35,944 nt of DNA. Origin: Octopus bimaculoides (Eukaryota). Below the pieces are notes generated by a model. That model was not told the DNA's origin and searched no databases. It saw only the letters and a program-made list of their open reading frames with translations. Below, in pieces: positions 1-35,783 of this stretch. Where the stretch lies: assembly GCF_001194135.2 (NCBI RefSeq), contig NC_068986.1:77820668-77856611 (forward strand), read 5' to 3'. Position 1 is the stretch's first letter. Each line of letters begins with the position of its first letter. The translations under genes and the position numbers were made by a program.

Positions 1-272
1 GCTCTTGTGCGGGTGATACATGAGGTTTCTCGAGCGAGATGAGCGTGGTCGTTGCCAGTACCGCCTGACTGGCCTTCGTGCGGGTGACACGTAAAAGCAC
101 CCACTACACTCTCTGAGTGGTTGGCGTTAGGAAGGGCATCCAGCTGTAGAAACACTGCCAAATCAGATTGGAGCCTGGTGTAGCCATCTGGTTTCACCAG
201 TCCTCAGTCAAATCGTCCAACCCATGCTAGCATGGAAAGTGGACGTTAAACGACGACGACGACGACGACGAT
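1..272 (+). mobile_element. Retroposon family C copy (LINE 3' UTR or SINE-like), trinucleotide tail
   Basis: Contains the recurrent blocks gtaaaagcacccactacactc, ggcgttaggaagggcatccagctgtagaaac and cccatgctagcatggaaa...gacgttaaacga, followed by a (CGA)n tail. The same blocks recur in several other copies in this window. Confidence 0.85.
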
Positions 273-3011: not shown

Positions 3012-3223
3012 GGTTTCAAATTTCAAATTTTCGCACAAGGCCAGCAACTCTGGGGGGGGGGTAAGTTGATTATATCGACTCGGGTATTCGACTAGTACTT
3101 ATTTTATTGACCCCTAAAAGGATAAAAGGTAAAGTTGACCTTGGTGGAATTTGAATGCAGAATGTAAAGATGGACAAAATGCCACTGAGCATTTTGCCTG
3201 GCATGCATACAATTCTCAGTGCC
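3012..3223 (-). mobile_element. SINE family B copy
   Basis: Similar to the reverse complement of 1682-1893 (ggtttcaaattt...cacaaggccagcaa...gataaaaggtaaagttgacc). Confidence 0.8.
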
Positions 3224-3321
3224 TGATATTCAAACCACTGCTTAGCCTTGAGTTCTTTCCTTTAGAGGTGCTGCTTCTGTTGCTAGCATTCAGACAAAGT
3301 TTCCACTATGGGTTTATCAAT

Positions 3322-3765
3322 AAGGCAGAGGCATGGCTGTGTGGTTAAGAAGTTTGCTTTGAAATCATGTGGTTTCCAGTTTAGTCCCACTGTGCAGCAC
3401 CTTGGACAAGTGTCTTCTACTATAGCCTTGGGATGACCAATATTTTGTCAGTGAATTTGGTTGACAGAAACTCTATGAAAGCCTATTGTGTGTGTGTGTG
3501 TGTGTGTGTATGTGTGCATGCGTGCGTGTGTGTGTGTGTGTGTATGTGTGCATGCATGCGTGTGTGTGTGTTTGTCATCACCCATTACACCACCTGATAA
3601 CTAGTGTTGGTTTGTTTACAACCACAAAACTTGGCTCAGCAAAAGTGACTGATAGAATAAGTACCAGGCTCAAACAATAAGTACTGGGGGCAATTTGTTT
3701 GACTAAAAATACACTTTAAGAAAGTGCCTCAACATGGTCACAGTCCAATGACTGAAACAAGTTAA
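3322..3765 (+). mobile_element. tRNA-derived SINE family A, full length, with internal (TG)n
   Basis: Structure is head ggcatggctgtgtggttaagaagtttgct...ttagtcccactg, body cttctactatagcc...gtgaatttgg, internal microsatellite, then 3' part gatagaataagtaccagg...atgactgaaacaag. Confidence 0.85.
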
Positions 3766-5454: not shown

Positions 5455-5703
5455 TTTCAGGTGCCAGTGCCACATAAAAAGCACCCATGCTTTATCTGTG
5501 GGACTGAGCCAGTGCTGCATGTGAAAAGCTGGTGGCATGTGAAAAGCACCCACTACACTCTGTTAAGTAGCTGGCATTAGGAAGGGCATTCAACTGTAGA
5601 AACCATGCCACGACAGACAATTGGAGTCTGGCCAGCTGCAAACCGTCCAACCTATGCTAGCATGGAAAGACGACATTAAACGATGATGGTGATGATGATG
5701 ATA
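5455..5703 (+). mobile_element. Retroposon family C copy with (GAT)n tail
   Basis: Same blocks as 1-272; directly follows the RTE ORF end. Confidence 0.85.
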
Positions 5704-5769: not shown

Positions 5770-6145
5770 GTGACAATGACATGCAACCAAGACCTTTGGA
5801 GATATGCCATGCTTGTGAAGACCTGTTGAACCAAGTGAAAGCGTAGTCGCAGCCAATGCTAGTGCAACCTGACTGGCACCCCTGCTGGCGGCATGTAAAA
5901 AGCACCATTTGAGTGTGGTCGATGCCAGTGCCGCTTGACAGGCTCCCATGCCAGTGGCATGTAAAAGCATCCACTACACTCTTGGAGGGGTTGGTGTTAG
6001 GACGGACATCCAACTGTAGAAACCTTGCCAAATCAGACTGGAGCATGGTGCAGCTTCCCAGCTTGCCAGTTCTCAGTCAAACCAGCCAACCCATGCCAGC
6101 ATCAAAAGTGGATGTTAAACGATTACTATAATGATGATGATATAA
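5770..6145 (+). mobile_element. Retroposon family C copy
   Basis: Contains repeated ggcatgtaaaa(a)gca subunits, the aggacatccaactgtagaaacc block, cccatgccagcat and a GAT-like tail. Confidence 0.8.
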
Positions 6146-7559: not shown

Positions 7560-7875
7560 CCTCTCTCTCCATCTGTGGTAGCCATGTTTTCCTTCTAATG
7601 CAAGGTGCTGTTTTGTCCCTCAATACTATTTCACACCTTCGTTGAGGGGGGTCTTGACCTGCAAGTTGCTTGGTGATCACACTGTTACTGGTATCACATA
7701 TAAAGCATCCAGTACACTCTGTAAAGTAGTTGGCATTAGGAAGGGCATCCAGCCATAGGAACCATGCCAAAGCAAACAGCAAAGCTTGGTGCAATCTTCT
7801 GATTTGGCAGTTCCTGTCAAACCGTCCTACTCATGCCAACATGGATAAAGGATGGTAAATGATGATGATGTTGAT
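7560..7875 (+). mobile_element. Retroposon family C copy with longer 5' part
   Basis: The segment tgcaagttgcttggtgat...aagcatccagtacactctgtaaagtagttggcattaggaagggcatccagc...catgccaacatgga is followed by (GAT)n. Confidence 0.8.
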
Positions 7876-8762
7876 GAGAAGCAGAGTTGATGAAAGCAGA
7901 GTTGATCTTGGTGAATTATTGAACTCATGATACTGGAAGCCAGAACAAATGCCATAAGGTATTTTTACCAATGCTCTAATCCTTCTGTCAACACCTCACC
8001 CAATGTTATTCTTAAAGCACAATAGTTAGCATGTGATGAGTTCAAACTTCGTATGAAATGGTTTGAGACTGAGGTATTCAAGAATGGTTGCATAGTTGAT
8101 ATATTGAACTTTATTACTTACTTTTTTTATATTATATTGTGACATATATTTACTTACATATGTTAGAAAAAAAAAAAGGAATGATTGAAGATGAGGAGTC
8201 TGCAAGCTGCAGTACAGGCAGCTTACTGTAAGAAATCAGTAACAGAAAAATAACATATAAAGGGTTGAGGGGACGATTTAATCCTGTCCTTATAGTCTTC
8301 CTAGTGCTGGTTGTATGATAGCATCTGCCCAGTCCACTCTGTATAGTGGTTGTTGATAGGAAGGGTATCCAGTTATAGAAACTATGCTTAAAAGAAAGAT
8401 GAACAACAACAGAGATTAGTGTTATTTTTCTCTAATGAAGTGTTTCTCTGATGACAAAACATTGTAACAGGAGACTAGATACCATGTGATCATCCAACTC
8501 ATTGTTTCTCATAGGGCAGCAGAGAGAACTATATGGGGCTGTAATAGGGTGGCCAAATTACAGTGTTTGTTCAAAACCATGGCAAAGGAAGATGAATTAT
8601 ATGGATGCAAACAATATTTTATCTTCTCATTAACTAAGAGAAAAGGGGCAAAGAATTTTGTGAAGTGGGTAGGCTGGTATTTGTCAGCTGAAGAATCATT
8701 GGTCTGATCCATGATGCCAGCATGGAAAACAAAGATTTAGAACAATGATAATATATATATAA

Positions 8763-9692: not shown

Positions 9693-9698
9693 CATGCA
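9693..9698 (-). promoter_or_regulatory. UGCAUG (Rbfox-type) motif about 40 nt downstream of the 12b-like donor
   Basis: Plus-strand catgca reads TGCATG on the gene strand. Function is inferred. Confidence 0.45.
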
Positions 9699-9738: not shown

Positions 9739-10051
9739 CTGAAAGGTTGTTATAAATGCCCAGAGAAGGGAATCAAAGTTAGCTCTTTTGCAGTGACAAC
9801 TAAGTTTGCTGGTAGCAGGTTTCCAATTTTGTAGTGATGGGAATGTAGTAGTGGTAGTAGTAGTACTAGTAGAATTAGTAGTAGAATTAATAATGTTGGT
9901 GACAGTTGTGGTAATATTGTTGTTGTTGTTATTGGTGGTGAAGATTGGAATAGCAGTGGTACTAGTAGTGGTGTTGATGGTGTAAATGGGTTCATCGTTC
10001 TGCTGATGACCTTCACAGAATTTGCCGCCGAAAAAACACATGCCTAAAACA
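9739..10051 (-). CDS. Cav3: Internal coding exon of Cav3, domain II S5/turret/P-helix, exon 12b-like, with long Thr/Asn-rich turret
   Basis: Translates (S)VLGMCFFGGKFC-[72 aa]-CHCKRANFDSLLWAFITTFQ. The GGxFC and RANFDSLLW motifs are 12b-type. Acceptor is ctttattttatctccccacctgcatgtag|T and donor is CAG|gtaacc. Length is 313 nt, phase 2 to phase 0, and the frame is open throughout. Confidence 0.92.
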
Positions 10052-10054
10052 CTA

Positions 10055-10060
10055 CATGCA
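10055..10060 (-). promoter_or_regulatory. UGCAUG motif immediately upstream of the 12b-like acceptor
   Basis: The gene strand reads cc-TGCATG-TAG|exon. Function is inferred. Confidence 0.4.
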
Positions 10061-10372
10061 GGTGGGGAGATAAAATAAAGTGACACAGTTGGCAAACTTG
10101 GGTAAAGAACAGTTCTAGTATTAATGGTTACAAATCTTCTGACTACATTGTTAGACAACAACTACAATGGCAGGTGAGGTTGAAGAGAGAATTAGTTATT
10201 ACATAAAACTGGTAACATGGAGAATACATATATATATGTGTGTGTATATATATATAAATATATATATATATATGTAGATACAATTATACACTTATATACA
10301 TATATATACATATTATATAAAATAAAATCTTGGCTGATGCATTAATGCGCTGCAGTTCTTGCAACAGCTGCT

Positions 10373-10552
10373 NNNNNNNNNNNNNNNNNNNNNNNNNNNN
10401 NNNNNNNNNNNNNNNNNNNNNNNNNNNNNNNNNNNNNNNNNNNNNNNNNNNNNNNNNNNNNNNNNNNNNNNNNNNNNNNNNNNNNNNNNNNNNNNNNNNN
10501 NNNNNNNNNNNNNNNNNNNNNNNNNNNNNNNNNNNNNNNNNNNNNNNNNNNN
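10373..10552. other. Assembly gap (N)
   Basis: Run of N. The other gaps are 17554-17650, 21802-22640, 22919-22928, 23580-24055, 25237-25578 and 28692-28730. Confidence 1.
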
Positions 10553-10776
10553 TATATATATATATATATATGTATGTATATACATATGTATGTATATACA
10601 TATATATGTATATACATATATATATACATACATATATATATATATACATACATATAAATATATATATATATATGTAGATACAATTATACACTTATATACA
10701 TATATATACATATTATATAAAATAAAATCTTGGCTGATGCATTAATGCGCTGCAGTTCTTGCAACAGCTGCTACTT

Positions 10777-10792
10777 AATGATGGTGATGATA

Positions 10793-10840
<48 letters not shown>

Positions 10841-10985
10841 GATGATGATGCTGATAAAGCGCATGGAATTATTGCAGATGACAATAAAGAGAGCAAGATA
10901 CAGAAAACATTGCCTCCCAGATTGATGCCAGTAAGCAACAGAACTCTACTAGCGAAAGCAATGTCAATGTAAATGTTGTTGTTGT

Positions 10986-11035
<50 letters not shown>

Positions 11036-11052
11036 ATGATGATGATGATGAT
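10777..11052. repeat. Two (GAT)n arrays flanking a unique ~120-bp spacer
   Basis: (GAT)n runs at about 10777-10850 and 10987-11052. On the gene strand they read (UCA)n. Confidence 0.9.
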
Positions 11053-11795: not shown

Positions 11796-12010
11796 CTCTT
11801 TTACTCTTTTACTTGTTTCAATCATTTGACTGCGGCCATCCAGGAACATCGTCTTTAGTCGAACAAATCGACCCCAGGATTTATTCTTTGTAAGCCTAGC
11901 ACTTATTCAATCAGTCTATTTTGCTGAACTGCTAAGTTACAGGGACGTAAACACACCAACATCGGTTGTCAAGTAATGGCGGGAGGACAGACACAGATAG
12001 ACGAACACAT

Positions 12011-12062
<52 letters not shown>

Positions 12063-12224
12063 GATGGGCTTCTTTCAGTTTCCATCTACCAAATCCACTC
12101 ACAAGGCTTTGGTTGGCCTGAGGCTATAGTAGAAGACATTTGCCCAAGATGCCATGCAGTGGAATTGAACCTGGAACCATGTGATTGGGAAGCATGCTTC
12201 TTACCACACAGTCACTCCTGTGCC
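11796..12224 (-). mobile_element. SINE family A, full length, with internal (TA)n/(CA)n
   Basis: Complete reverse copy with tail ctcttttactcttttacttgtttca, 3' domain, microsatellite and tRNA-like head ending cttaccacacagtcactcctgtgcc. Confidence 0.9.
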
Positions 12225-12311
12225 ACTCACTGTCACTCATATTTCATAAACTCTGTAGTCTTATCTTTTGACTAAATGAAAGCTCTGAAGAAACAACAAT
12301 TATATGTTTGG

Positions 12312-13255: not shown

Positions 13256-15456
13256 TAAGAAGGGTATTGGATTCAACCAAACCCAAAGATACAGGTAATA
13301 CCGAGTAAGTGCTGTATACCGGCTAGTTCTGCCCCATTCGTTGTATATAGATTAATTTTAATATTCTTAGAAAGACAAAACAAAGGCATTCATATATCTG
13401 TGTAACTTCTCTTTTGCATATATATCTGAGAAAAAAACTCAGTGAAGTCTTATTCATTAATATATGTGCCAAACCATTATGATTGCATTTTATGTTTGTA
13501 GGTTTAGGTACATTGCATAACATGCTTGGTATAGTGAGGCACTGCAATGCTTGCAGCAAAATTTGAATGCATCCTTATTCTTTTTAATCACTTAACTACA
13601 ACAGATAAATATCAGGTTAACTGAGTTGTAAGTCAACTCAAAAGAAAAAATCAATATCTCTTGAAATTAAGAGTAAAATATAGCTTGGCAGAAAACAAGG
13701 TGAAGTTATAAATATTCTAGTTAATTTTATACTTGAAAATGTGAACACAGGGAAAAAATTTTGAAGAATAATGAATTATCTAAAATAACTTTAAACAACA
13801 CATAATAATTGACTTATAAATGTTAATTGAAGTATTATCATGGAATAATTACTGTATATGAACGCTAACCAAGAAAAATACCAAGTCTTACAAGGCCAAA
13901 TCATGTCTAGGGTTGTCATGTTAACACCAACAGACTCACTCCCCACTGCATTGTACATGCATTTTACATTTAATTAATTTTGATTAATTTAAATTCTAAG
14001 ATTGTTTACCTTGCTTTTTCTTATTCAGAATTTATAATTAAGATAATGCTGGTTTCTAATATCATTAAGAGTGTAATAATTTTAATTAATCATTTTTTTT
14101 TTACTACATCAAGTATATTACTGCCCATTTTATTATTTGTTTTATGCAGCAGAAATTTCTGGGAATACTTCTTTAGTCATTTTAGAAATATTATTCTGTT
14201 AGTCCTTGTCATCTTTTTTGAAAAGTGGCAATGTTCTATCATGAAAAACACTATAGTATCCATTTACAAGATATTTCCCTAGAATTTTGTATACAAAGAA
14301 ATGAAGTTGCAGAACAATCCTATCTATGTTATCAGAGAAAAAAAATTGCTTTTAGAATGACAAAAATAGCTATATTATTTGTCTTAGAATGATAGAAGAT
14401 TATATATTTCATAATTCATATTCTAAAGATAAAATAAATGTTGAAACATTAAAGATATTTGAACTGTTTCCCCTACTGAAATTCTCATTAGAGAATTGAT
14501 AATGGTTAAAATATGAAGAAACAATGGGAATTCAGGTAGCAGTGGTGGTGGTAGTGGTGGTGGTGGTGGTGGTGGTGCAGGGGATGTTTGGGAAAATAAA
14601 CATTTGGTACAGCATTGGAAAAGTTAATGTGGTTCAAGAACAATGCAATGGTGCATGCTACTACTGAAGTAGATGCAAATAAATAGTACTTCCTGGCGGC
14701 CTGTATTGGAAAGCTAAAACAATTTGCATTACTAAGATTCTAAGACATGCATTACAAGAAATGGGTGGAGGGTGAAAAAAAAATTAATGCAAAATTGAAA
14801 GGAAAAAAAAGTTAATTAAATTTCTGAAAAATAAATGTTTTCCTATTTCATTTTATTATTATTAATTTTTTTTTATTTTTGAAGGAAAGTTAGTTGATAA
14901 ATGCAACAAAAGAAATTAAGAAATTAAACTTTGCCAAAAGCGCTGCCAAGATCAGAAGACATTGCCACACTTCAGAGCATTTCAGAGTAATGTAGATATA
15001 ATTTTTTTTAAAAGGATGATGGTTTGTTTTTGGCCCCCAAACTGAGAGTTTATCATAGGAGAAAATAGAACATAGATGTATTTTTTGTCCCCCATATAAA
15101 ATTTAATTGAGTCAACTATTCAACTTTCCATGCTCATAGATACAAATAAATGAATTGTCATTCCTGTTGATTTCAGAAGATTGGTGATCAGATTTATGAC
15201 ATTTATCCCTATCCGAAAGGCATTTGTGGAACAAATTAAAAATAGAAAGGGAAACTACTTCTAAGAACCAAACCTATTTTGTAGGTTCAGTTTTTCAGAA
15301 ACTTACCACTTGTACTTCAACCTTTGTTACAGAGAGAAAGAAAAAATTATTGGTTGATGATTCATTTACACTGCTTTTGTATCTGGCTTGCAAGATTCTT
15401 TATGAGAATTTGTGTGTTGAAACAAATTTTGTTGTGTCTGGAGAGTCCTATTGCCA

Positions 15457-19554: not shown

Positions 19555-19697
19555 TACCGGTGGCACATAAACGTGCCTCAGTGTCATGCAAATGGCACCT
19601 GTGCTGGTGACATGTAAAAGCACCCATCACACTCTCAGAGTGGTGGGCATTAGGAAGGGCATCTAGCCATAGATGATGATGATGGTGATGATGATGG

Positions 19698-19738
<41 letters not shown>
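19555..19738 (+). mobile_element. Retroposon family C copy, internally shortened, with (GAT)n tail
   Basis: The segment catgtaaaagcacccatcacactctcagagtggtgggcattaggaagggcatctagc is followed by a long (GAT)n run. Confidence 0.8.
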
Positions 19739-19742
<4 letters not shown>

Positions 19743-20429: not shown

Positions 20430-20918
20430 CTGGTAACCACGTACCTCCTCTACAGCAAGAGACCTGTTTCTGTCTCTCAGTCTAATCTTTCATCTCCGTC
20501 TAACCTTTCACACTCTAACCTTTCATCATCTGACACAAGATCACCTTCTGCAATGCCCCCTCCCATCTCAAAGGGTCTTTGTCTTGCAAGTTACTTGGTG
20601 ACCCTGCAAGTGCTGGTTCTGCATAAAAAGCATCCAGTCCACACTGTAAAGTGGTTGGCATTTGGAAGGGCATTCAGCTGTAAAAACCATGTCAAAACTG
20701 ACCTTGCTTGTGCTGGTGCCATGTAAAAAGCACTCAGTGCATACTTCGGGGGTGTTTGGTGATAGGAAGGGTATCCAGTTGTAAAAACTGTGCCAAATGT
20801 ACACAGAAGTCTGGTGCAGTCTTCTACCTGGCTAGCTCCAGACAAACTGTCCAACCAATGCCAGTATGGGAGGTGGATGATAAACGATGATGATGATCAT
20901 GATGATGATGATGATGAT
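20430..20918 (+). mobile_element. Retroposon family C, long copy with (GAT)n tail
   Basis: Shares the 5' extension with the 7560 copy (tggtaaccacgt.., gtcttgcaagttacttggtga), has tandem subunits and ends gtggatgataaacgatgatgat. Confidence 0.8.
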
Positions 20919-22640: not shown

Positions 22641-22918
22641 GATGTGGATATCTTGGCAGAGCAAAATCCCATCATAACTGTTGAGGAACTAGCAGATAAG
22701 TTTGGATTTGGTTATTCAAGTCAGTACTAGACGAAAAACAACAATCTTTGGTTTCAAGATGAAAGGTATTCTTCCATCAGGATAATGCTTCACTACATAC
22801 AGTGATGATGAAATTCCAAAGGCTGGAGCAGTTTGAATGGGAAACGATGATGCCCTACCCACCATATGCACTGGACATTGCCCCATCTGATTATCATTTA
22901 TTCCACAGTCTTCAAAAT
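22641..22918 (+). mobile_element. Mariner transposase fragment (catalytic region), probably a misplaced contig
   Basis: From 22775 the frame reads HQDNASLHTVMMKFQRLEQFEWETMMPYPPYALDIAPSDYHLFHSLQN, matching the mariner HDNARPH and YSPDLAPSD motifs. Bases 22641-22851 are identical to 23369-23579. Confidence 0.85.
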
Positions 22919-22928
22919 NNNNNNNNNN

Positions 22929-22972
<44 letters not shown>

Positions 22973-22989
22973 CATAATGTGTGTATATA

Positions 22990-23579
22990 TTGGGTCATCC
23001 CATAAATAATGCAGCTTTTTGCAATGCATGAACTAAAAGTTGGGGATGATGGGATAAACTACCTGCATCAACTTGTTATAAAGGTAGGTAGTAATTTTAC
23101 CTTGTCCTTATTCTTAGTGTAAGCTTTGAAGAGTGCTATTCAATTTTAACTGTTATTTTTTCAAAGCTATAATAAAACTGACAAAGGAGCAGATCCAGTA
23201 TATGAGTTCAATAAAGGCAACAGTGCAACAGAAAGTGCAAGGAACATTAATGCAGTATATGGGGATCAGACAATAAGCGTAAGCCAGAGTCAACAGTTGT
23301 TCCAGAAATTCTGAGCTGGAAACTACAGCCTAGAAGACAAGCCTCATCCTGGAAGAGCTGTAGAGCTTGATGTGGATATCTTGGCAGAGCAAAATCCCAT
23401 CATAACTGTTGAGGAACTAGCAGATAAGTTTGGATTTGGTTATTCAAGTCAGTACTAGACGAAAAACAACAATCTTTGGTTTCAAGATGAAAGGTATTCT
23501 TCCATCAGGATAATGCTTCACTACATACAGTGATGATGAAATTCCAAAGGCTGGAGCAGTTTGAATGGGAAACGATGAT
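22990..23579 (+). mobile_element. Mariner element, 5' part, internally deleted and truncated by a gap
   Basis: Begins TA|TTGGGTCATCCCATAAATAATGC (TIR-like). The HTH region reads YEFNKGNSATESARNINAVYGDQTISV..FQKF*AGNYSLEDKPHPGRAVELD..EQNPIITVEELADKFGFGYS and then jumps to HQDNA. Confidence 0.85.
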
Positions 23580-24085: not shown

Positions 24086-24086
<1 letters not shown>

Positions 24087-24910
24087 AAATATCATAAAAT
24101 ATCAAATATCATTACCGAGTTAGAAAACGGAGATCTAATGGATACAAATTAATTAATTAATTAATCAACATATTCACCTACAACTGTTTCATTTCACAAA
24201 CAAAATTAAAATTACAAAACATATATAAAAATATAATTTTGCATTTTAAATAGCTTGCATGAAAAACCATCAGGGTGTACAAAGGACAATACAAGGATTA
24301 CATTAGGATACATTTGGAACACTCAGAATATATAGACATGTTTATTATGTATGTAGGTATATATGTATGTATATATGTGTGTGTGTGCATGCATGTGTTA
24401 AAATTATTGCTCTTATTTTTAATTCAATAACAATGATAACAATAATCATGAATAATGGATTATAGTATATAAGAGTTAAGTAATAAAATGAAAGTAAAAG
24501 TAAAATAAAATTTGTTACCCTTTTACTTCTTCATATATTACTTTACTCTTATATACTATAATCCCTTATTCATGATTATTGTTATTGAATTAAAAATAAA
24601 AGTAATAATTTTAATACATGCATGCACACACACATACACATATACATACACACATAATAAACATGTCTATATATTCTGAATATTCCAAACATATCCTAAT
24701 GTAATCCTTGTATTGTCCTTTGTACACCCTGATGGTTTTCCATACAAGGTATTTAAAATGCAAAATTATATATTTATATATGTTTTGTAATTTTAATTTA
24801 AATGAAACAATTGCAGGTGAATATGTTAATTAATTAATAAATTAATTTCTATCCATTAGATCTCCCTGTTTTCTAACTCGATAAGGATATTTGATATCTT
24901 ATGATATTTT
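24086..24910. repeat. Large imperfect inverted repeat (foldback), arms of about 415 and 391 bp, 19-bp centre
   Basis: Arm 24086-24500 is an approximate reverse complement of 24520-24910. For example gagttagaaaacggagatctaatggata pairs with tatccattagatctccctgttttctaactc, and ccatcagggtgtacaaaggacaatacaaggattacattaggata pairs with tatcctaatgtaatccttgtattgtcctttgtacaccctgatgg. Confidence 0.95.
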
Positions 24911-26168: not shown

Positions 26169-26559
26169 TCTTTTATCTTTTATCTTTTATCCTTTGCTTG
26201 TTTCAGTCATTAGACTGTGGCCATACTGGGGCACCACTTTGAAGAATTCATAGTCGAATGTATTGACCCCACTACTTTTTTTTGAAAGCTTGCTACTTAT
26301 TCCATTGATTTCTTTTACTGAACTGCTAATGTATGGGGACATAAATACACAAACACGCAGTGGAAGGGAGGAGGGCAAACACAGACACACAAACACACAC
26401 ACACACACATGATGGGCTTCTTTCAGTTTTCATCTACCAAATCCACTCACAAGGCTTTGGTTGGCCCAAAGCTATAGTAGAAGACACTTGCAGTGGGATT
26501 GAAACCAGAACTATGTGGTTGGGAAGCAAGTTTCTTACCACACAGCCATGCCTGCACCT
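26169..26559 (-). mobile_element. SINE family A, full length
   Basis: Reverse copy with (tcttttat)n tail, internal (CA)n and head cttaccacacagccatgcctgcacc. Confidence 0.9.
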
Positions 26560-27136: not shown

Positions 27137-27407
27137 GCATTTTTAGTAATTATTTTACAAAGTGGATTTTGCTAAAGGCATCAAAGTTGCTAAGATGATG
27201 GATTAAGTCTACTGGCCAAGTATAACATGGTAAATTCTGAACTCAGAATGCAATGAGCCAGAAAAATAATGCAAAGCAGCAGATGTGATATTTTTACCAT
27301 TCTGTTAATCCACCATCCAAGATTAGTGCTATTTTATTGCCCCTCGAAAGGGTGAAAAGCAGAATTGATATGAACTCAGAGTATAAGAGAATTAGAAGAA
27401 ATATTAA

Positions 27408-27615
27408 TTTCAAATTTTGGCACAAGGCCAGCAAAACATGAGGGGATAAGTTAATTACATCAACCGCAGTGTTCAACTAGTACCTATTCTGTCGACTCCA
27501 AAAGAATGAAAGGCAAAGTCAACCTCAGCAGGATTTGAACTCAGAATGTAAAACCAGATGAAATGCTGCTAAATATTTTGCCTTGCATGCTAACGATTCT
27601 GCCAGCTCACTACCT
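27408..27615 (-). mobile_element. SINE family B, full length
   Basis: Contains tttcaaattttggcacaaggccagcaa..gaatgaaaggcaaagtcaacctc..tttgaactcagaa..gctaacgattctgccagctc. Confidence 0.85.
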
Positions 27616-27726
27616 GAGAAGTGGAAGAAATATTGTGAATCATTTTATCCAATGCTCCATCATCTCTGCCAAATGTAAAAAGCCAAGACAAATGCTAATC
27701 ATGGGCATGGAATTATACTAATTAAA

Positions 27727-28139
27727 AGTGGGTGGGTGATAAGAAGTTTGCCTCCCAACCACATGATTTCAGGTTCAGTCTCACTGTGTGGGACCTTGAG
27801 CAAAAGTCTTCTACTATAGACACAGGCTGACTAAAGCCTTGTGAGTAGATTTGGTAGGTGGAAACTGAAAGAAGCCCATAGTATACATGTGTGTGTGTGC
27901 ATGTATGTATGTATGTGTGTGCATGCATGTGTGCCTTTGTGTTTGTGCCTGTCTTTCCACTGCTTGACAACCACTTTATTTTCTTGTAACTTAATAGTTT
28001 GGCAAAAGAGACTGATAGAATGTGTACCAGTCTTTAAAAAATGAGTAACAGGGTTCATTTGTTTGACTATAACTTTTTAAAGTGGTACCAAAGCATGCCT
28101 GCAGTCAAATGTTTAAGACAAATAAAAGAGGATAAAAGA
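27727..28139 (+). mobile_element. SINE family A, full length
   Basis: Head aagaagtttgcctcccaaccacatgatttcaggttcagtc, internal (TG)/(TATG)n, 3' domain and taaaagag tail. Confidence 0.85.
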
Positions 28140-30638: not shown

Positions 30639-30846
30639 AGGGGGAAGAAAGGGAGAGAGAGAAAGAGAGAAGACATAGTGGAGAGAGAGAGTGGGGGCAG
30701 ATATTGAGATGTAAGAAGAAAGAAGTAAAAATATAAAAATTAGGGGGAAGAAAGGGAGAGAGAGAACGAGAGAAGACATAGTGGAGAGAGAGAGAGTGGG
30801 AGTAGATATTGAGATGTAAGAAGAAAGAAGTAAAAATATAAAAATT
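30639..30846. repeat. Tandem duplication, two units of about 104 bp, purine-rich
   Basis: Unit 30639-30741 is nearly identical to 30742-30846 (agggggaagaaagggagaga...agacatagtggagagag...gatattgagatgtaagaagaaagaagtaaaaatataaaaatt). Confidence 0.9.
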
Positions 30847-32288
30847 ACAATAGGATCCACTTTAAACCTTAAAAAGAAGGATAAGAGAGAGAAAGAATGA
30901 GAGAGAAAGGAGTAAGATATGCATATCTACATGTGTTTATATGTGTATGTGTGCACTTGTGTGTGCTTGTGTGTGTGTGAGTGCAAGAGAGAAAGAGAAA
31001 GAAAGAGAGAGACTGTGTATATAGACGCATACATTCATGTGCAAGTGTGCGCACATGTGCACACACATACACATGCAAACACACACATGTACACATGCAA
31101 ATACATAAATGCAAAAGTGTAATTTTCTCTGTGAAAGAGATTCAGGGCAAGGATAAATGGTTAGGAATATATGCCAAAGAAGTGTGATAAACGCATTCAG
31201 ACCATGACAGAATAGTTTTGGAAGTTAAAGATATGATTTAATTATTTTATTTTTTTTTTTTTGTTACCATAAGCTGAAAAGAATTTACACTTTTATTGAT
31301 TAAACATATGATGATTAATTCTACTACTTAAATATTGGTCAGCTTTTTTAGCCACACCGTAATACACCTATAATGCAAATTTGATTGTTAATCAAGTTAT
31401 GTCTGACATACATGTCAAACTTTGAAGAATTAGTTAAACTGAGAAAATATATAATAGAATAATTTTTGCATGAGAAAACCTTTAAACAGACAATAGCCAT
31501 AATAGAATAAATTTTTAGAACATAAAGGATAAAATTGCATATGATATATTCAGAGTGGCACGCTATAGTTTTGGTGATCTCAAAACTGTTAGTAAATATC
31601 TAAATAAATGCCTAAATATTTGTCTATTTGTCCGTATGTAAGTTGTTGTATCAATACTGTTCGTAGAATAAAAAGATATGTTGGTAGCTTAGATGGTAGA
31701 AAAAAATAAAGTGTTATTGAAACAAATTAAGAATGAGAAAAATATTAATGTTCTACTATGAAACGACATAAGAGAGGAATTTTTATGATAATTAAATAAT
31801 AAAAATGACAAAGTTGAGTGGGTAGCATATGATCAAAATCTGGGTTTGCAACTATAAAACAATAATTCATTTTTCTATACTATAAGATATGAAATTCATT
31901 ATTATGGAGACAGAAGTGAAAAAAAAAAACAAAAAAAAAAACAAACAAAACATAAAAAACAAAGAAATGAAAACCAAACTCAGTTAATATGCTGTAATAT
32001 AAAAATAGGTATAAATATCAAAGAAATTCAATTCCATTCTTAATGACATGCATTCTAGCTACTTTAAAAACTGGTAAATTTTGTAAGATACCAATTTACG
32101 TGGGCAGGCAGCAGACGTTCTCAATTTTGTATGAATGATTGGGATTGTGTGAATGTTCAGAATGCTCATATCATTTCAAAGGAGTTTAAGAGTAATTGAA
32201 AGGGCTGAGATTGGGAATTTAAATTGGATTGCTGAAACAGAATGCTAAAAATCTTACTTCTATAATTGTCATAGCTTTATACAATATT

Positions 32289-32491
32289 GGTTTCAAATTG
32301 TGGCACAAGGCCAGCAATTTTGGGGGAGGTGATATTGGTTACATCAACCCCAGTGCTCAAATATTTTACTGGCCCTGAAAGCATGAAAGGCAAAGTTGAC
32401 ATGGGCTGAAACTGAACCCAGAATGTAATGACAGCTAAAATACCACTTAGCACTTTGCCCAGTATGCTAATGATTCTACCAGCTCTTCCCC
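32289..32491 (-). mobile_element. SINE family B, full length
   Basis: Contains ggtttcaaattgtggcacaaggccagcaattttggggg..gcatgaaaggcaaagttgac..tgctaatgattctaccagctc. Confidence 0.85.
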
Positions 32492-32709: not shown

Positions 32710-33887
32710 CCTGTGTTTGACTGGTATTTTATTTTGTTGACTTTGTAAGAATGAAATACAAAATCTATCTCTGTTGGATTTGAATTCAGTCGCATTTTCA
32801 TTTGATGTTCTACTATATCTGTCTATCCATGTATTAGTAATGTAAATGAAGTGCTCACAAGTGTGAATCAGGAATTTTTTTGGAGTTGATTAGTAAAAGC
32901 CCTGTTATATCACTGTACTCTATACATATATATATGAATAAATATGAACAAGTGAGATATTGCAGATCTGTCAAATGGAGTGTTTTTCAAATTTGATTTA
33001 TATCTCTAAAAATGTTCAACTCTATTTTTTAATTAGGAAATTATAAAATCAAAACCAACAATACCAACAACTTCATTTGTCTATACAAAAACCAAATTTT
33101 GAGATAAATGAACAGACTTTTAACTGCTTCAACTTCAGTATATTATTAATAATTAGTAGGTGATTTCAATAGAAATTACCTGAATTTGAACTCAGAATCC
33201 TGTGGTATCAAATTTAGAATTCTATATCAGGTGTTTAAATCTCTACTGATTTTCTTCTTCACTACCGCTCTAACACCAAAAATAACAATGATAAAATCTC
33301 TATTTATATATAATTATAAACATAGAGACACATATACAGACATATATGTGTGCACTCACATATACATATATTTGTTAATAAAAAGATGTCTGGCATGTTA
33401 GTGACTATAAAGCGTGAGATGTCTACTTAGATTTCTGTCAGACAGATATGCTATTGAAAATCAGTTTTCTATGAAGAAAATGAAGAAGAAGAAGGAAATA
33501 AAAAGCAACCAACAAAAATACCCCAAAACTCAGACTTGTTGTTGCTGTTGAAGTTGTTTCATTTATATGTGGCACAGTATCAGTCTAAAAACACCTTGTT
33601 ATAGACAGTGAGTCTTGTACAAAGGGATATTTGTCTTCTAGCAAGAAGAAAACAAAGTTTAAAACACTTATTCCCACCGAAATGACCAGTTCAAGAATGA
33701 AGTATGCTCTAAGAAAACGAGCAATGAATAAGGCTTATGTCAGTTGCAGACTTATAGTACACAAGAAAACAGTCTTTCTCTCTGACATTATTTATATTTT
33801 CTCTGTAATGAAGAGAGAGATAAAAAAACCACCTTCTTTTCAAAAAAACAAATATAAAATCAGTTCTATGTGAAATTTTAATAGCCT

Positions 33888-34279
33888 GGCACACGCATGG
33901 CTGCATGGTTAAGAAGTTTACTTTGCAATCATGTGGCTTCAGGTTCAGTTCCATTGCACAGCAATGTCTTCTACTATTAGTACCAAGCTAACCAAATCCT
34001 TGAGAGTCGATTTTGTAGATGGAGACTGTGTGAGAGCTCATTGTATATGTATTGAGTGTTTGCACCTGTGTTTGTCCTTAAGCACTGCTTAGCAGCCAGT
34101 GTTAGTTTGTTTACTTCCCAGTAACTTAACAGTTCAGCAAAAAAGGCTGATAGAATAAATGCCATCATACTTGGTCATAATTTTAAAATACAAAAATTAG
34201 TGTTGATCTGTTTGACTAAAAATCCTTGAAGACATTGCTCCAGCATGGACACAGCCCAATGATTAAAACAAGTAAAAAC
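33888..34279 (+). mobile_element. SINE family A, full length, degraded
   Basis: Contains gcatggctgcatggttaagaagttt..ggttcagttcc..cttctactat..gatagaataa..gctccagcatgg..aaacaagtaaaa. Confidence 0.8.
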
Positions 34280-35206: not shown

Positions 35207-35212
35207 CATGCA
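35207..35212 (-). promoter_or_regulatory. UGCAUG (Rbfox-type) motif about 20 nt downstream of the 12a-like donor
   Basis: Plus-strand catgca reads TGCATG on the gene strand, in non-microsatellite context. Function is inferred. Confidence 0.45.
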
Positions 35213-35231: not shown

Positions 35232-35373
35232 CTGAAACACAGTAAGGATTGACCAGAGTAAGGAGTCGAAATTCTTTCGACTACAGTTGTGGTGGGCATA
35301 TGAGTACGTCTGCGTGGACATTATCCTTTTCTGGCCACAAAATTTACACCCAAATAAGTTCATTCCAAGGATG
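35232..35373 (-). CDS. Cav3: Internal coding exon of a T-type Ca channel (Cav3), domain II S5/turret/P-helix, exon 12a-like (tri-cysteine)
   Basis: Translates (S)[47 protein letters not shown], matching the Cav3 DII signatures SILGMxLFGCKF and [16 protein letters not shown]. Acceptor is gtgttttgcttcag|C, with a CTAAT branch-like motif at 35390-35394. Donor is CAG|gtatcg. Length is 142 nt, phase 2 to phase 0. Confidence 0.95.
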
Positions 35374-35440: not shown

Positions 35441-35476
<36 letters not shown>

Positions 35477-35500
35477 GGAGGAGGAGGAGGAGGAGGAGGG
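35441..35500. repeat. (GAT)n-(GAG)n array upstream of the 12a-like acceptor
   Basis: Directly visible. On the gene strand it reads (CCU)n then (UCA)n. Confidence 0.9.
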
Positions 35501-35783
35501 GAGGATAAGGACAGCATTTCACAATAGTGCAATATAGCAGCTTGATGGAGATCAAAATTTTTTGGAGAGGATAAAAATAAGAAAAGGGAAGAGTAGAAAT
35601 GGATGGGTGAGGGATGACAATAATGATGATGCAACTGATGATATTTAAGACGAGGCTTAAGAAGAAATGTATGCAGTGAGATGAGGAAAGCCAAGAGAAC
35701 GGATGTGTGATAATGTAGAAAGAGGAAGAAGTAGAGGACAAAGAAGCTAAAGAATGAGTCCTTTTTACTATGTGCACAAGGTC

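Follow-up and report, generated by a model that had tools for sequence, protein, structure and literature searches.

An alternative exon 12b of Cav3 with a long threonine-rich insert in its domain II turret

The 35,944-nt stretch of Octopus bimaculoides DNA analyzed here, referred to as the window, contains the genuine, coding exon 12b of a single Cav3 (T-type) gene, one of two alternative exons and probably used in place of exon 12a. The extracellular loop that it encodes carries an insert that we read chiefly as a tolerated slippage expansion. No variant of this kind was described in the literature covered, its length and cysteine pattern both departing from those published for exon 12b, but the exon is of a known type and does not constitute a new kind of system. 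The sole relative found in searchable collections was P0001, an open reading frame on a 617-kb contig of ENA assembly ERZ21867824, and this orthologous locus is referred to as L001 throughout.

Exon 12b of the window covers the end of IIS5, the extracellular turret and the start of the pore helix P1. Its 5' side consists of a pyrimidine tract followed by AG (...cctgcatgtAG), with the junction ctccccacctgcatgtAG/TGTTTTAGG, and its 3' border reads CAG/GTaacc, the slash marking the splice junction in both cases. After one phase base the exon translates as VLGMCFFGGKFC-EGHQQNDEPIYTINTTTSTTAIPIFTTNNNNNNITTTVTNIINSTTNSTSTTTTTTTFPSLQNWKPATSKLS-CHCKRANFDSLLWAFITTFQ, with cysteines at positions 5 (end of S5), 12, 85 and 87. 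The loop between C12 and C85 is composed of 23 Thr, 12 Asn, 7 Ser, 7 Ile and 4 Pro amongst its 72 residues, together with only five charged residues (one Asp, two Glu and two Lys), and its commonest codons are ACT (12 times), ACC (9), AAC (7), AAT (5) and ATT (5). An earlier inspection of this DNA from its letters alone (hereafter the sequence-only reading) had reported 72 residues with the same Thr, Ser and Asn counts and few charges, four N-glycosylation sequons (NTT, NIT, NST and NST), a C...CxC arrangement plus a Cys in S5, and intact AG/GT sites at the exon edges, and our recount reproduced each of these observations.

Searches by tblastn with canonical 12b peptides matched both ends of exon 12b. 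The loop itself is stop-free, but frame 2 of the repeat is likewise open across it, and the absence of stops is therefore weak coding evidence when taken alone; the evidence that exon 12b is coding lies in its conserved flanks, which are held in the same frame. The poly-Val open reading frames that run over the repeat on the plus strand were attributed to the repeat itself and dismissed. No match to Rfam families or tRNA genes was found anywhere in the window on either strand, which leaves no RNA-gene explanation. The coordinates of all features are collected in Table 1.

Table 1. Positions of the Cav3 exons, their diagnostic residues and associated repeats in the window and at the orthologous locus L001.
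Feature	Sequence	Position	Strand	Remarks
Cav3 exon 12b	window	9739-10051	-	313 nt, phase 1, 104 codons; from translation and AG/GT borders
72-residue loop, C12 (GGKFC) to C85 (CHC)	window	9799-10014	-	19-23 residues in canonical 12b
Low-complexity core, residues 24-69, TINTTTSTTAIPIFTTNNNNNNITTTVTNIINSTTNSTSTTTTTTT	window	9844-9981	-	Ser/Thr 26/46
Ile22 codon (ATT)	window	9985-9987	-	Cys22 in the orthologue; canonical first Cys of the middle CxC; from alignments
Terminal CxC (Cys85-His86-Cys87)	window	9790-9798	-	sole CxC retained
Extra Cys5 (LGMCFF), outer end of IIS5	window	10036-10038	-	common to the L001 orthologue
Ala90 codon (GCT), RANFD	window	9781-9783	-	neutral residue at the Lys/Ala selectivity-switch position
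TGCATG upstream of 12b	window	10055-10060	-	ends 1 nt before the acceptor AG; last base 4 nt before the exon
Cav3 exon 12a	window	35232-35373	-	142 nt, phase 1; CxxC...C; AG/GT borders
Lys33 of exon 12a (RKNFD)	window	35274-35276	-
TGCATG in the intron after 12a, 20-25 nt past the donor	window	35207-35212	-	same place in L001 (1860-1865, +)
Intronic period-3 microsatellites	window	10778-10855, 10986-11052, 14542-14577, 19672-19739, 20886-20918, 35441-35505
Dispersed repeats, first group	window	40-272, 5528-5703, 5910-6142, 7649-7877, 19601-19673, 20573-20905
Dispersed repeats, second group	window	3019-3707, 11797-12225, 26183-26554, 27400-28139, 32283-32485, 33887-34162
Exon 12a	L001	1701-1842	+	same splice borders as in the window
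Exon 12b	L001	9991-10231	+	241 nt; 8.1 kb downstream of L001 12a

Exon 12a lies 25 kb upstream of 12b on the same strand and carries the motifs GCKFC...C and RKNFD. Its best matches amongst solved structures were to the domain II S5-P region of human Cav3.2, Cav3.3 and Cav3.1, and its Pfam Ion_trans match (E 2.7e-4) fell below the curated cut-off. With 47 codons it is one residue over the published 12a range, and its protein is 89% identical to that of the L001 orthologue. Both 12a and 12b begin with a phase base, and whether this is C or T it completes a Ser codon; (I/V)LGM comes next. As both lengths (142 and 313 nt) are 1 mod 3, the inclusion of both or of neither would shift the reading frame, so that one of the two is expected per transcript. 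Only two exon-12-type sequences are found in the window and only two in L001; tblastn searches of both loci with canonical 12a, 12b, exon 11 and exon 13 peptides revealed no third, penta-cysteine 12b, and no exon 11 or exon 13.

Protostome Cav3 genes are described as having two mutually exclusive exons, 12a of 38-46 aa with a CxxC...C turret and 12b of 48-55 aa with a C...CxC...CxC turret (PMC7382465). The assignment of the window exon as 12b, already made in the sequence-only reading, is upheld by its start (FFGGKFC), by a terminal CxC placed directly before the (D/K)R-x-(N/H)F(D/N) motif (CHCKRANFD), and by its location downstream of a 12a of the same phase. In FGGKFC, as opposed to FGCKFC, a Gly occupies the site where 12a and the vertebrate channels carry the Cys that bonds to the first voltage sensor. 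Two published characteristics of 12b are absent from this exon, namely the penta-cysteine framework, of which only C12...C85xC87 is present, and the bounded length, as the window exon has 104 aa (about twice the maximum) and the L001 exon 80 aa. In the canonical 12b exons used for comparison, P0029, P0037 (mite), P0071 (bug) and P0089 (flatworm), the first Cys is separated from the terminal CxC by 19-23 residues with a CxC in mid-loop, and at this middle site the window exon has Ile22-Tyr23-Thr24. The earlier proposal that the middle CxC had been replaced by the insert is supported: the pair is absent, and its site holds about 50 additional residues of low complexity. A residue of the Cys5 type was found in none of the other retrieved Cav3 fragments with a pattern-matched turret.

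Comparison with known systems further defines the variant. Lymnaea stagnalis LCav3-12b is also the second of two exclusive IIS5-P1 turret exons and longer than its 12a, and it shares FGGKFC, a terminal CxC before (D/K)R-x-NFD and an Ala 20 residues before the outer-pore Asp. It differs in length (48-55 aa versus 104) and in its number of loop cysteines (five versus three), and the window exon adds both the Cys at the S5 end and about 50 Thr/Asn/Ser/Ile-rich residues at the middle-CxC site. Exon 12a, which is tri-cysteine (CxxC...C) and Na+-permeant in Lymnaea, has the same phase and borders as the window 12b, whereas 12b is without the GCKFC cysteine, has a CxC, carries Ala in place of Lys and is located downstream. 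A eukaryotic Cav3-like fragment from ENA (P0025, 352 aa) has a 12a-type CxxC...C turret with about 40 extra residues, which indicates that the domain II turret can hold such a number between conserved cysteines; unlike the window insert, that of P0025 is charged, non-repetitive and located in the CxxC...C loop, and the two are unrelated in sequence. The domain II filter of P0025 reads QESW rather than QEDW, and this fragment therefore lacks the outer-pore Asp.

The 12b protein of L001, VLGMCFFGGKFC-EPQQNSDSNCHTTTTTTSTTTTSSTTTTTTTTTTQTSLQNRTSVWQPR-CHCARANFDSLLWAFITTFQ (80 aa), has a poly-Thr loop that is 24 residues shorter than that of the window (48 versus 72), and its exon, at 241 nt, is also 1 mod 3, the frame being held despite a length difference of 72 nt. 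The homology is confirmed by the first Cys of the middle pair, which L001 keeps with the canonical spacing (C-x9-C-H-T); the second position in L001 is a Thr, the first of the poly-Thr run. The alignment with L001 thus places the tract exactly at the former middle CxC. The window exon has one Cys fewer than its L001 orthologue. Non-repetitive loop residues are shared in frame on both sides of the tract (CE..QQN.D before it; SLQN, WxP and CHC after it), and RANFD in 12b and RKNFD in 12a are present at both loci. The alignment of the window with L001 is confined to the two exons and about 25-45 nt of intron flank, with nothing else in 20 kb. Because the introns cannot be aligned and the synonymous changes approach saturation, the split between the two is deep, and the Thr tract either predates it or arose twice at the same codon. 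The insert had been called lineage-specific in the sequence-only reading, a term that needs to be widened to take in L001, which has diverged from the window by a pS of 0.44-0.60 and has a Thr-rich loop in common with it.

Within the tract, TRF identified a degenerate (ACT)n array of 13.3 copies with 78% matches (window 9845-9884) and a 12-nt unit present three times (9854-9889) that makes both NST sequons. The loop also has an (AAC)4 run with AAT flanks, and its remainder is degenerate, so that the earlier description of a loop built from microsatellites applies to the arrays found by TRF and not to the rest. Seven period-3 microsatellites, of the types (ATG)n, (TGA)n, (GTG)n, (GAT)n and (GAG)n, are located in the introns of the window, most of them 89-100% pure, so that the locus is rich in sequence from which such an insert could arise. 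No period-3 array of the window is more degenerate than the Thr tract of exon 12b. Across the 46 codons of the core of this tract, departures from ACT number 6, 20 and 21 at codon positions 1, 2 and 3, respectively, Ser and Thr account for 57% of the residues, and many Thr codons are now Asn, Ile or Ser. This looks like relaxed constraint accompanied by new slippage (the AAC run and the 12-nt duplication), and the similar variation at positions 2 and 3 shows that Thr identity is not tightly held in the window species, which makes a specific role for the insert doubtful.

The most economical reading of these observations, and one that we favor with moderate confidence, is a tolerated trinucleotide-slippage insert at the loop apex. 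An ACN/AAY slippage tract would have expanded at the apex, at the canonical middle-CxC site, adding about 50 Thr/Asn/Ser/Ile-rich and presumably flexible residues with the loss of both middle cysteines, and the membrane-proximal ends of the loop (FGGKFC, SLQN-W-P, CHC and the Ala of RANFD) are conserved and constrained. The insert may bear O-glycans on its Ser/Thr runs as well as some N-glycans, and its composition suggests that it is probably a flexible, O-glycosylated extension of the apex. An AlphaFold2 model of the isolated exon (mean pLDDT 45.9) was uninformative and was not used as evidence of disorder.

Alternatively, selection may have maintained the insert as a heavily glycosylated, mucin-like canopy that covers the entrance to the domain II pore and alters Na+/Ca2+ selectivity, access of divalent metals or toxins, or surface trafficking, an explanation that we consider possible but doubtful. 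A Ser/Thr-rich tract does occur at the same site in two deeply diverged species, in a turret known to control selectivity and Zn2+/Ni2+ block (PMC7382465), but its length and sequence differ greatly between them (72 versus 48 residues). In L001, 24 of the 25 tract codons (96%) encode Ser or Thr and the variation is mostly synonymous, with 4, 1 and 13 departures from ACT at codon positions 1, 2 and 3; this pattern fits selection for hydroxyl residues, but the same pattern could result from ACA, ACC and ACT units slipping in blocks, a repeat can be kept pure by ongoing slippage alone, and the window tract is degenerating towards Asn and Ile. N-glycosylation of the heavily glycosylated cap envisaged in the sequence-only reading is not supported, as the four observed sequons are at the level expected from composition (4.67 +/- 1.56 in shuffled loops; P(>=4) = 0.77) and none of them is conserved in L001, whose single sequon (NRT) lies elsewhere, outside the tract.

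Mucin-like (PTS) domains are defined by at least 40% Ser+Thr, with Pro and tandem repeats. Ser and Thr make up 30/72 residues of the window loop (42%), 26/46 of its core (57%) and 65% of the L001 loop; Pro, at 4/72, is low for a mucin domain, and the repeats are degenerate (78% matches). The insert is similar to mucin-like PTS domains and to coding trinucleotide expansions in its high Ser/Thr content, imperfect codon repeats and extracellular position, and differs in being short (about 50 residues), Pro-poor and, in the window species, rich in Asn and Ile.

The insert could also be removed from the mRNA by splicing of an internal GT...AG intron within exon 12b, leaving a short mature loop. Several in-frame GT...AG pairs exist (for example, GT at exon position 42 with AG at 269, 228 nt), and one pair starting with GT36 is found in both species. 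However, on a crude donor matrix the internal donors score 3.2 at most versus 7.1 for the real donor, and the best of them (AAG/GTCATC) is missing from L001. Internal splicing would moreover cost the exon its conserved SLQN-W-P and CHC or else reduce the loop below the length of any known 12b, and the residues that flank the tract are conserved in frame on both sides. Judging from these sequence features, internal splicing of exon 12b is unlikely, and we give it only a slight chance.

Another explanation is that 12b has lost its function in this species and persists as a decaying or unused exon, with the growth of the repeat and the cysteine losses reflecting relaxed selection. Amongst the observations in its favor are the loss of two of the five framework cysteines, the degenerate repeat, the lack of transcripts in our searches and reports of some species with 12a alone (PMC4436565). 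Over the 33 flank codons of 12b, however, the comparison of the window with L001 yielded a pS of 0.60 and a pN of 0.031 (11.5 synonymous and 2.5 non-synonymous changes; Fisher p = 1e-8), that is, a pN/pS of about 0.05 at near-saturated synonymous divergence; the corresponding values for 12a were 0.44 and 0.049. This excess of synonymous change in the flanks places exon 12b under coding constraint, and the splice sites are intact and identical, and the frame and intron flanks conserved, in both species. The substitution pattern thus indicates that exon 12b has been translated in this frame in both lineages and is not a decaying pseudo-exon, and we regard decay as very improbable.

The least probable explanation, that the length of the repeat is in part an artefact of a gapped scaffold in which a low-complexity tract was mis-sized, draws on the seven N runs of the window, one of them 320 nt from exon 12b, and on duplicated gap edges, but the tract is not a pure repeat and varies along its length, its frame is intact, and the independent long-contig assembly of the relative (L001) has the same architecture. 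The duplicated gap edges comprise 22641-22851, which equals 23369-23579 (100%, 211 nt), and 10224-10372, which resembles 10624-10772 (95%, 149 nt) across the gap at 10373-10552; they look like a scaffold artefact, and repeat lengths in the window therefore need to be read with care.

With respect to ion selectivity, the residue at the Lys/Ala switch position is Ala in 12b and Lys in 12a, both in the window and in L001. In Lymnaea, the switch residue is likewise Lys in 12a and Ala in 12b, where A1078 of LCav3-12b stands 20 residues from the outer-pore D1098 (PMC9694082), and the 12a channel is Na+-permeant whereas the 12b channel is more Ca2+-selective (PMC7382465, PMC9694082). Ala90 of the window lies 14 residues before the exon end, and would precede the outer-pore Asp of domain II by 20 residues if exon 13, which is outside the window, begins with ILTQED as assumed here; the spacing was checked on P0029 and P0037. 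The Lys/Ala rule is established for molluscs and nematodes only, and Lys is found at the switch position in vertebrate Cav3 channels and in arthropod 12b. By analogy with Lymnaea, the window 12b should be the Ca2+-preferring isoform and 12a the Na+-permeant one, because Ala would leave the outer-pore Asp unneutralised.

The reduced number of cysteines may modify this preference. Cys-to-Ala (delta-Cys) mutants of LCav3 have increased Na+ permeability, a weaker Ca2+ block and a higher potency of Zn2+ and Ni2+ (PMC7382465), and share with the window exon a 12b loop with fewer turret cysteines; in these mutants, however, four cysteines were removed by engineering, whereas two have been lost naturally in the window and one in L001. 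By analogy, the reduction from five to three loop cysteines would loosen the turret and shift both the Na+/Ca2+ preference and the sensitivity to Zn2+ and Ni2+. A more far-reaching possibility, which we put forward only tentatively and at low confidence, is a rebuilding of the Ca2+-type turret in the sole T-type channel, with the voltage-sensor-tethering Cys and then one intraturret bridge lost stepwise (from five cysteines to four in L001 and to three in the window) and a flexible, Ser/Thr-rich, O-glycosylated stalk kept by selection in their place.

Each of the two exons is accompanied by a TGCATG hexamer in its conserved intron flank. The element at the 12b acceptor is found at the same place in L001 (9982-9987, +), as is the one downstream of the 12a donor. 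UGCAUG is the element bound by Rbfox splicing factors, and under the usual Rbfox position rule these sites would favor 12a and repress 12b where Rbfox is active. The background of TGCATG in the window is high, with 66 occurrences on both strands versus 32 expected, because of TG/CA repeats; a further copy is located at 9693-9698 (-).

The introns contain several other elements. A Mos1/mariner-type transposase remnant lies between 12a and 12b at 23150-23311 (+) (Pfam HTH_48, E 3.4e-12), and the open reading frames at 22763-23002 (+) and 23315-23455 (+) look like further transposase pieces (e.g., ...DIAPSDYHLFHSLQN). The 825 nt at 24086-24910 match their own reverse complement at 86% identity, forming a long palindrome or inverted duplication between two N gaps. 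At least two families of dispersed intron repeats (200-430 nt, 67-86% identity) occur in both orientations, and none of these is found in L001. Additionally, a 105-nt unit is duplicated in tandem at 30639-30847 (95% identity) in a purine-rich intron region.

A word-indexed protein search with exon 12b returned P0001 as its one match, and an exhaustive phmmer search of 1.84 billion cluster representatives, clustered at 50% identity such that transcripts could sit behind other representatives, returned only P0001 and a 12b fragment from a mite. Two probe searches of a 5.8-billion-protein set, with probes made of the window 12b or 12a and generic Cav3 flanks, retrieved hundreds of Cav3 fragments and none of this lineage. 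Since 12a transcripts of this lineage are likewise missing, the protein sets are uninformative about the expression of 12b. Exact look-up of the window's open reading frames found none on record in the collection, and scans of JGI metagenomes with a protein pattern and a degenerate DNA pattern gave no match. Full-text literature searches on cephalopod or octopus Cav3 exon 12 and on Thr-rich channel loops returned nothing relevant. The papers that define the 12a/12b framework take their molluscan examples from gastropods (Lymnaea, Lottia, Biomphalaria and Aplysia), and their text contains no cephalopod term.

Of the extracellular loops that set Na+ versus Ca2+ preference in four-domain channels from outside the selectivity filter, the exon 12 turret of domain II is the best documented; published descriptions give it a nearly invariant cysteine framework and a tightly bounded length. 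A natural 12b of twice the normal length, with two framework cysteines fewer and its ends under purifying selection, tests which parts of this framework are needed, and the intermediate cysteine state of L001 provides a second test point. If the insert is inert, the turret apex tolerates low-complexity expansion, which would be an ordinary result. If instead the turret has been rebuilt under selection, the gating kinetics, the Na+/Ca2+ preference and the Zn2+, Ni2+ and toxin sensitivity of the 12b isoform would be unlike those of any described Cav3, and the exon would represent in nature what the delta-Cys mutants are in the laboratory. The conserved UGCAUG beside both exons suggests, in addition, a splicing switch between Na+-type and Ca2+-type isoforms of the channel.
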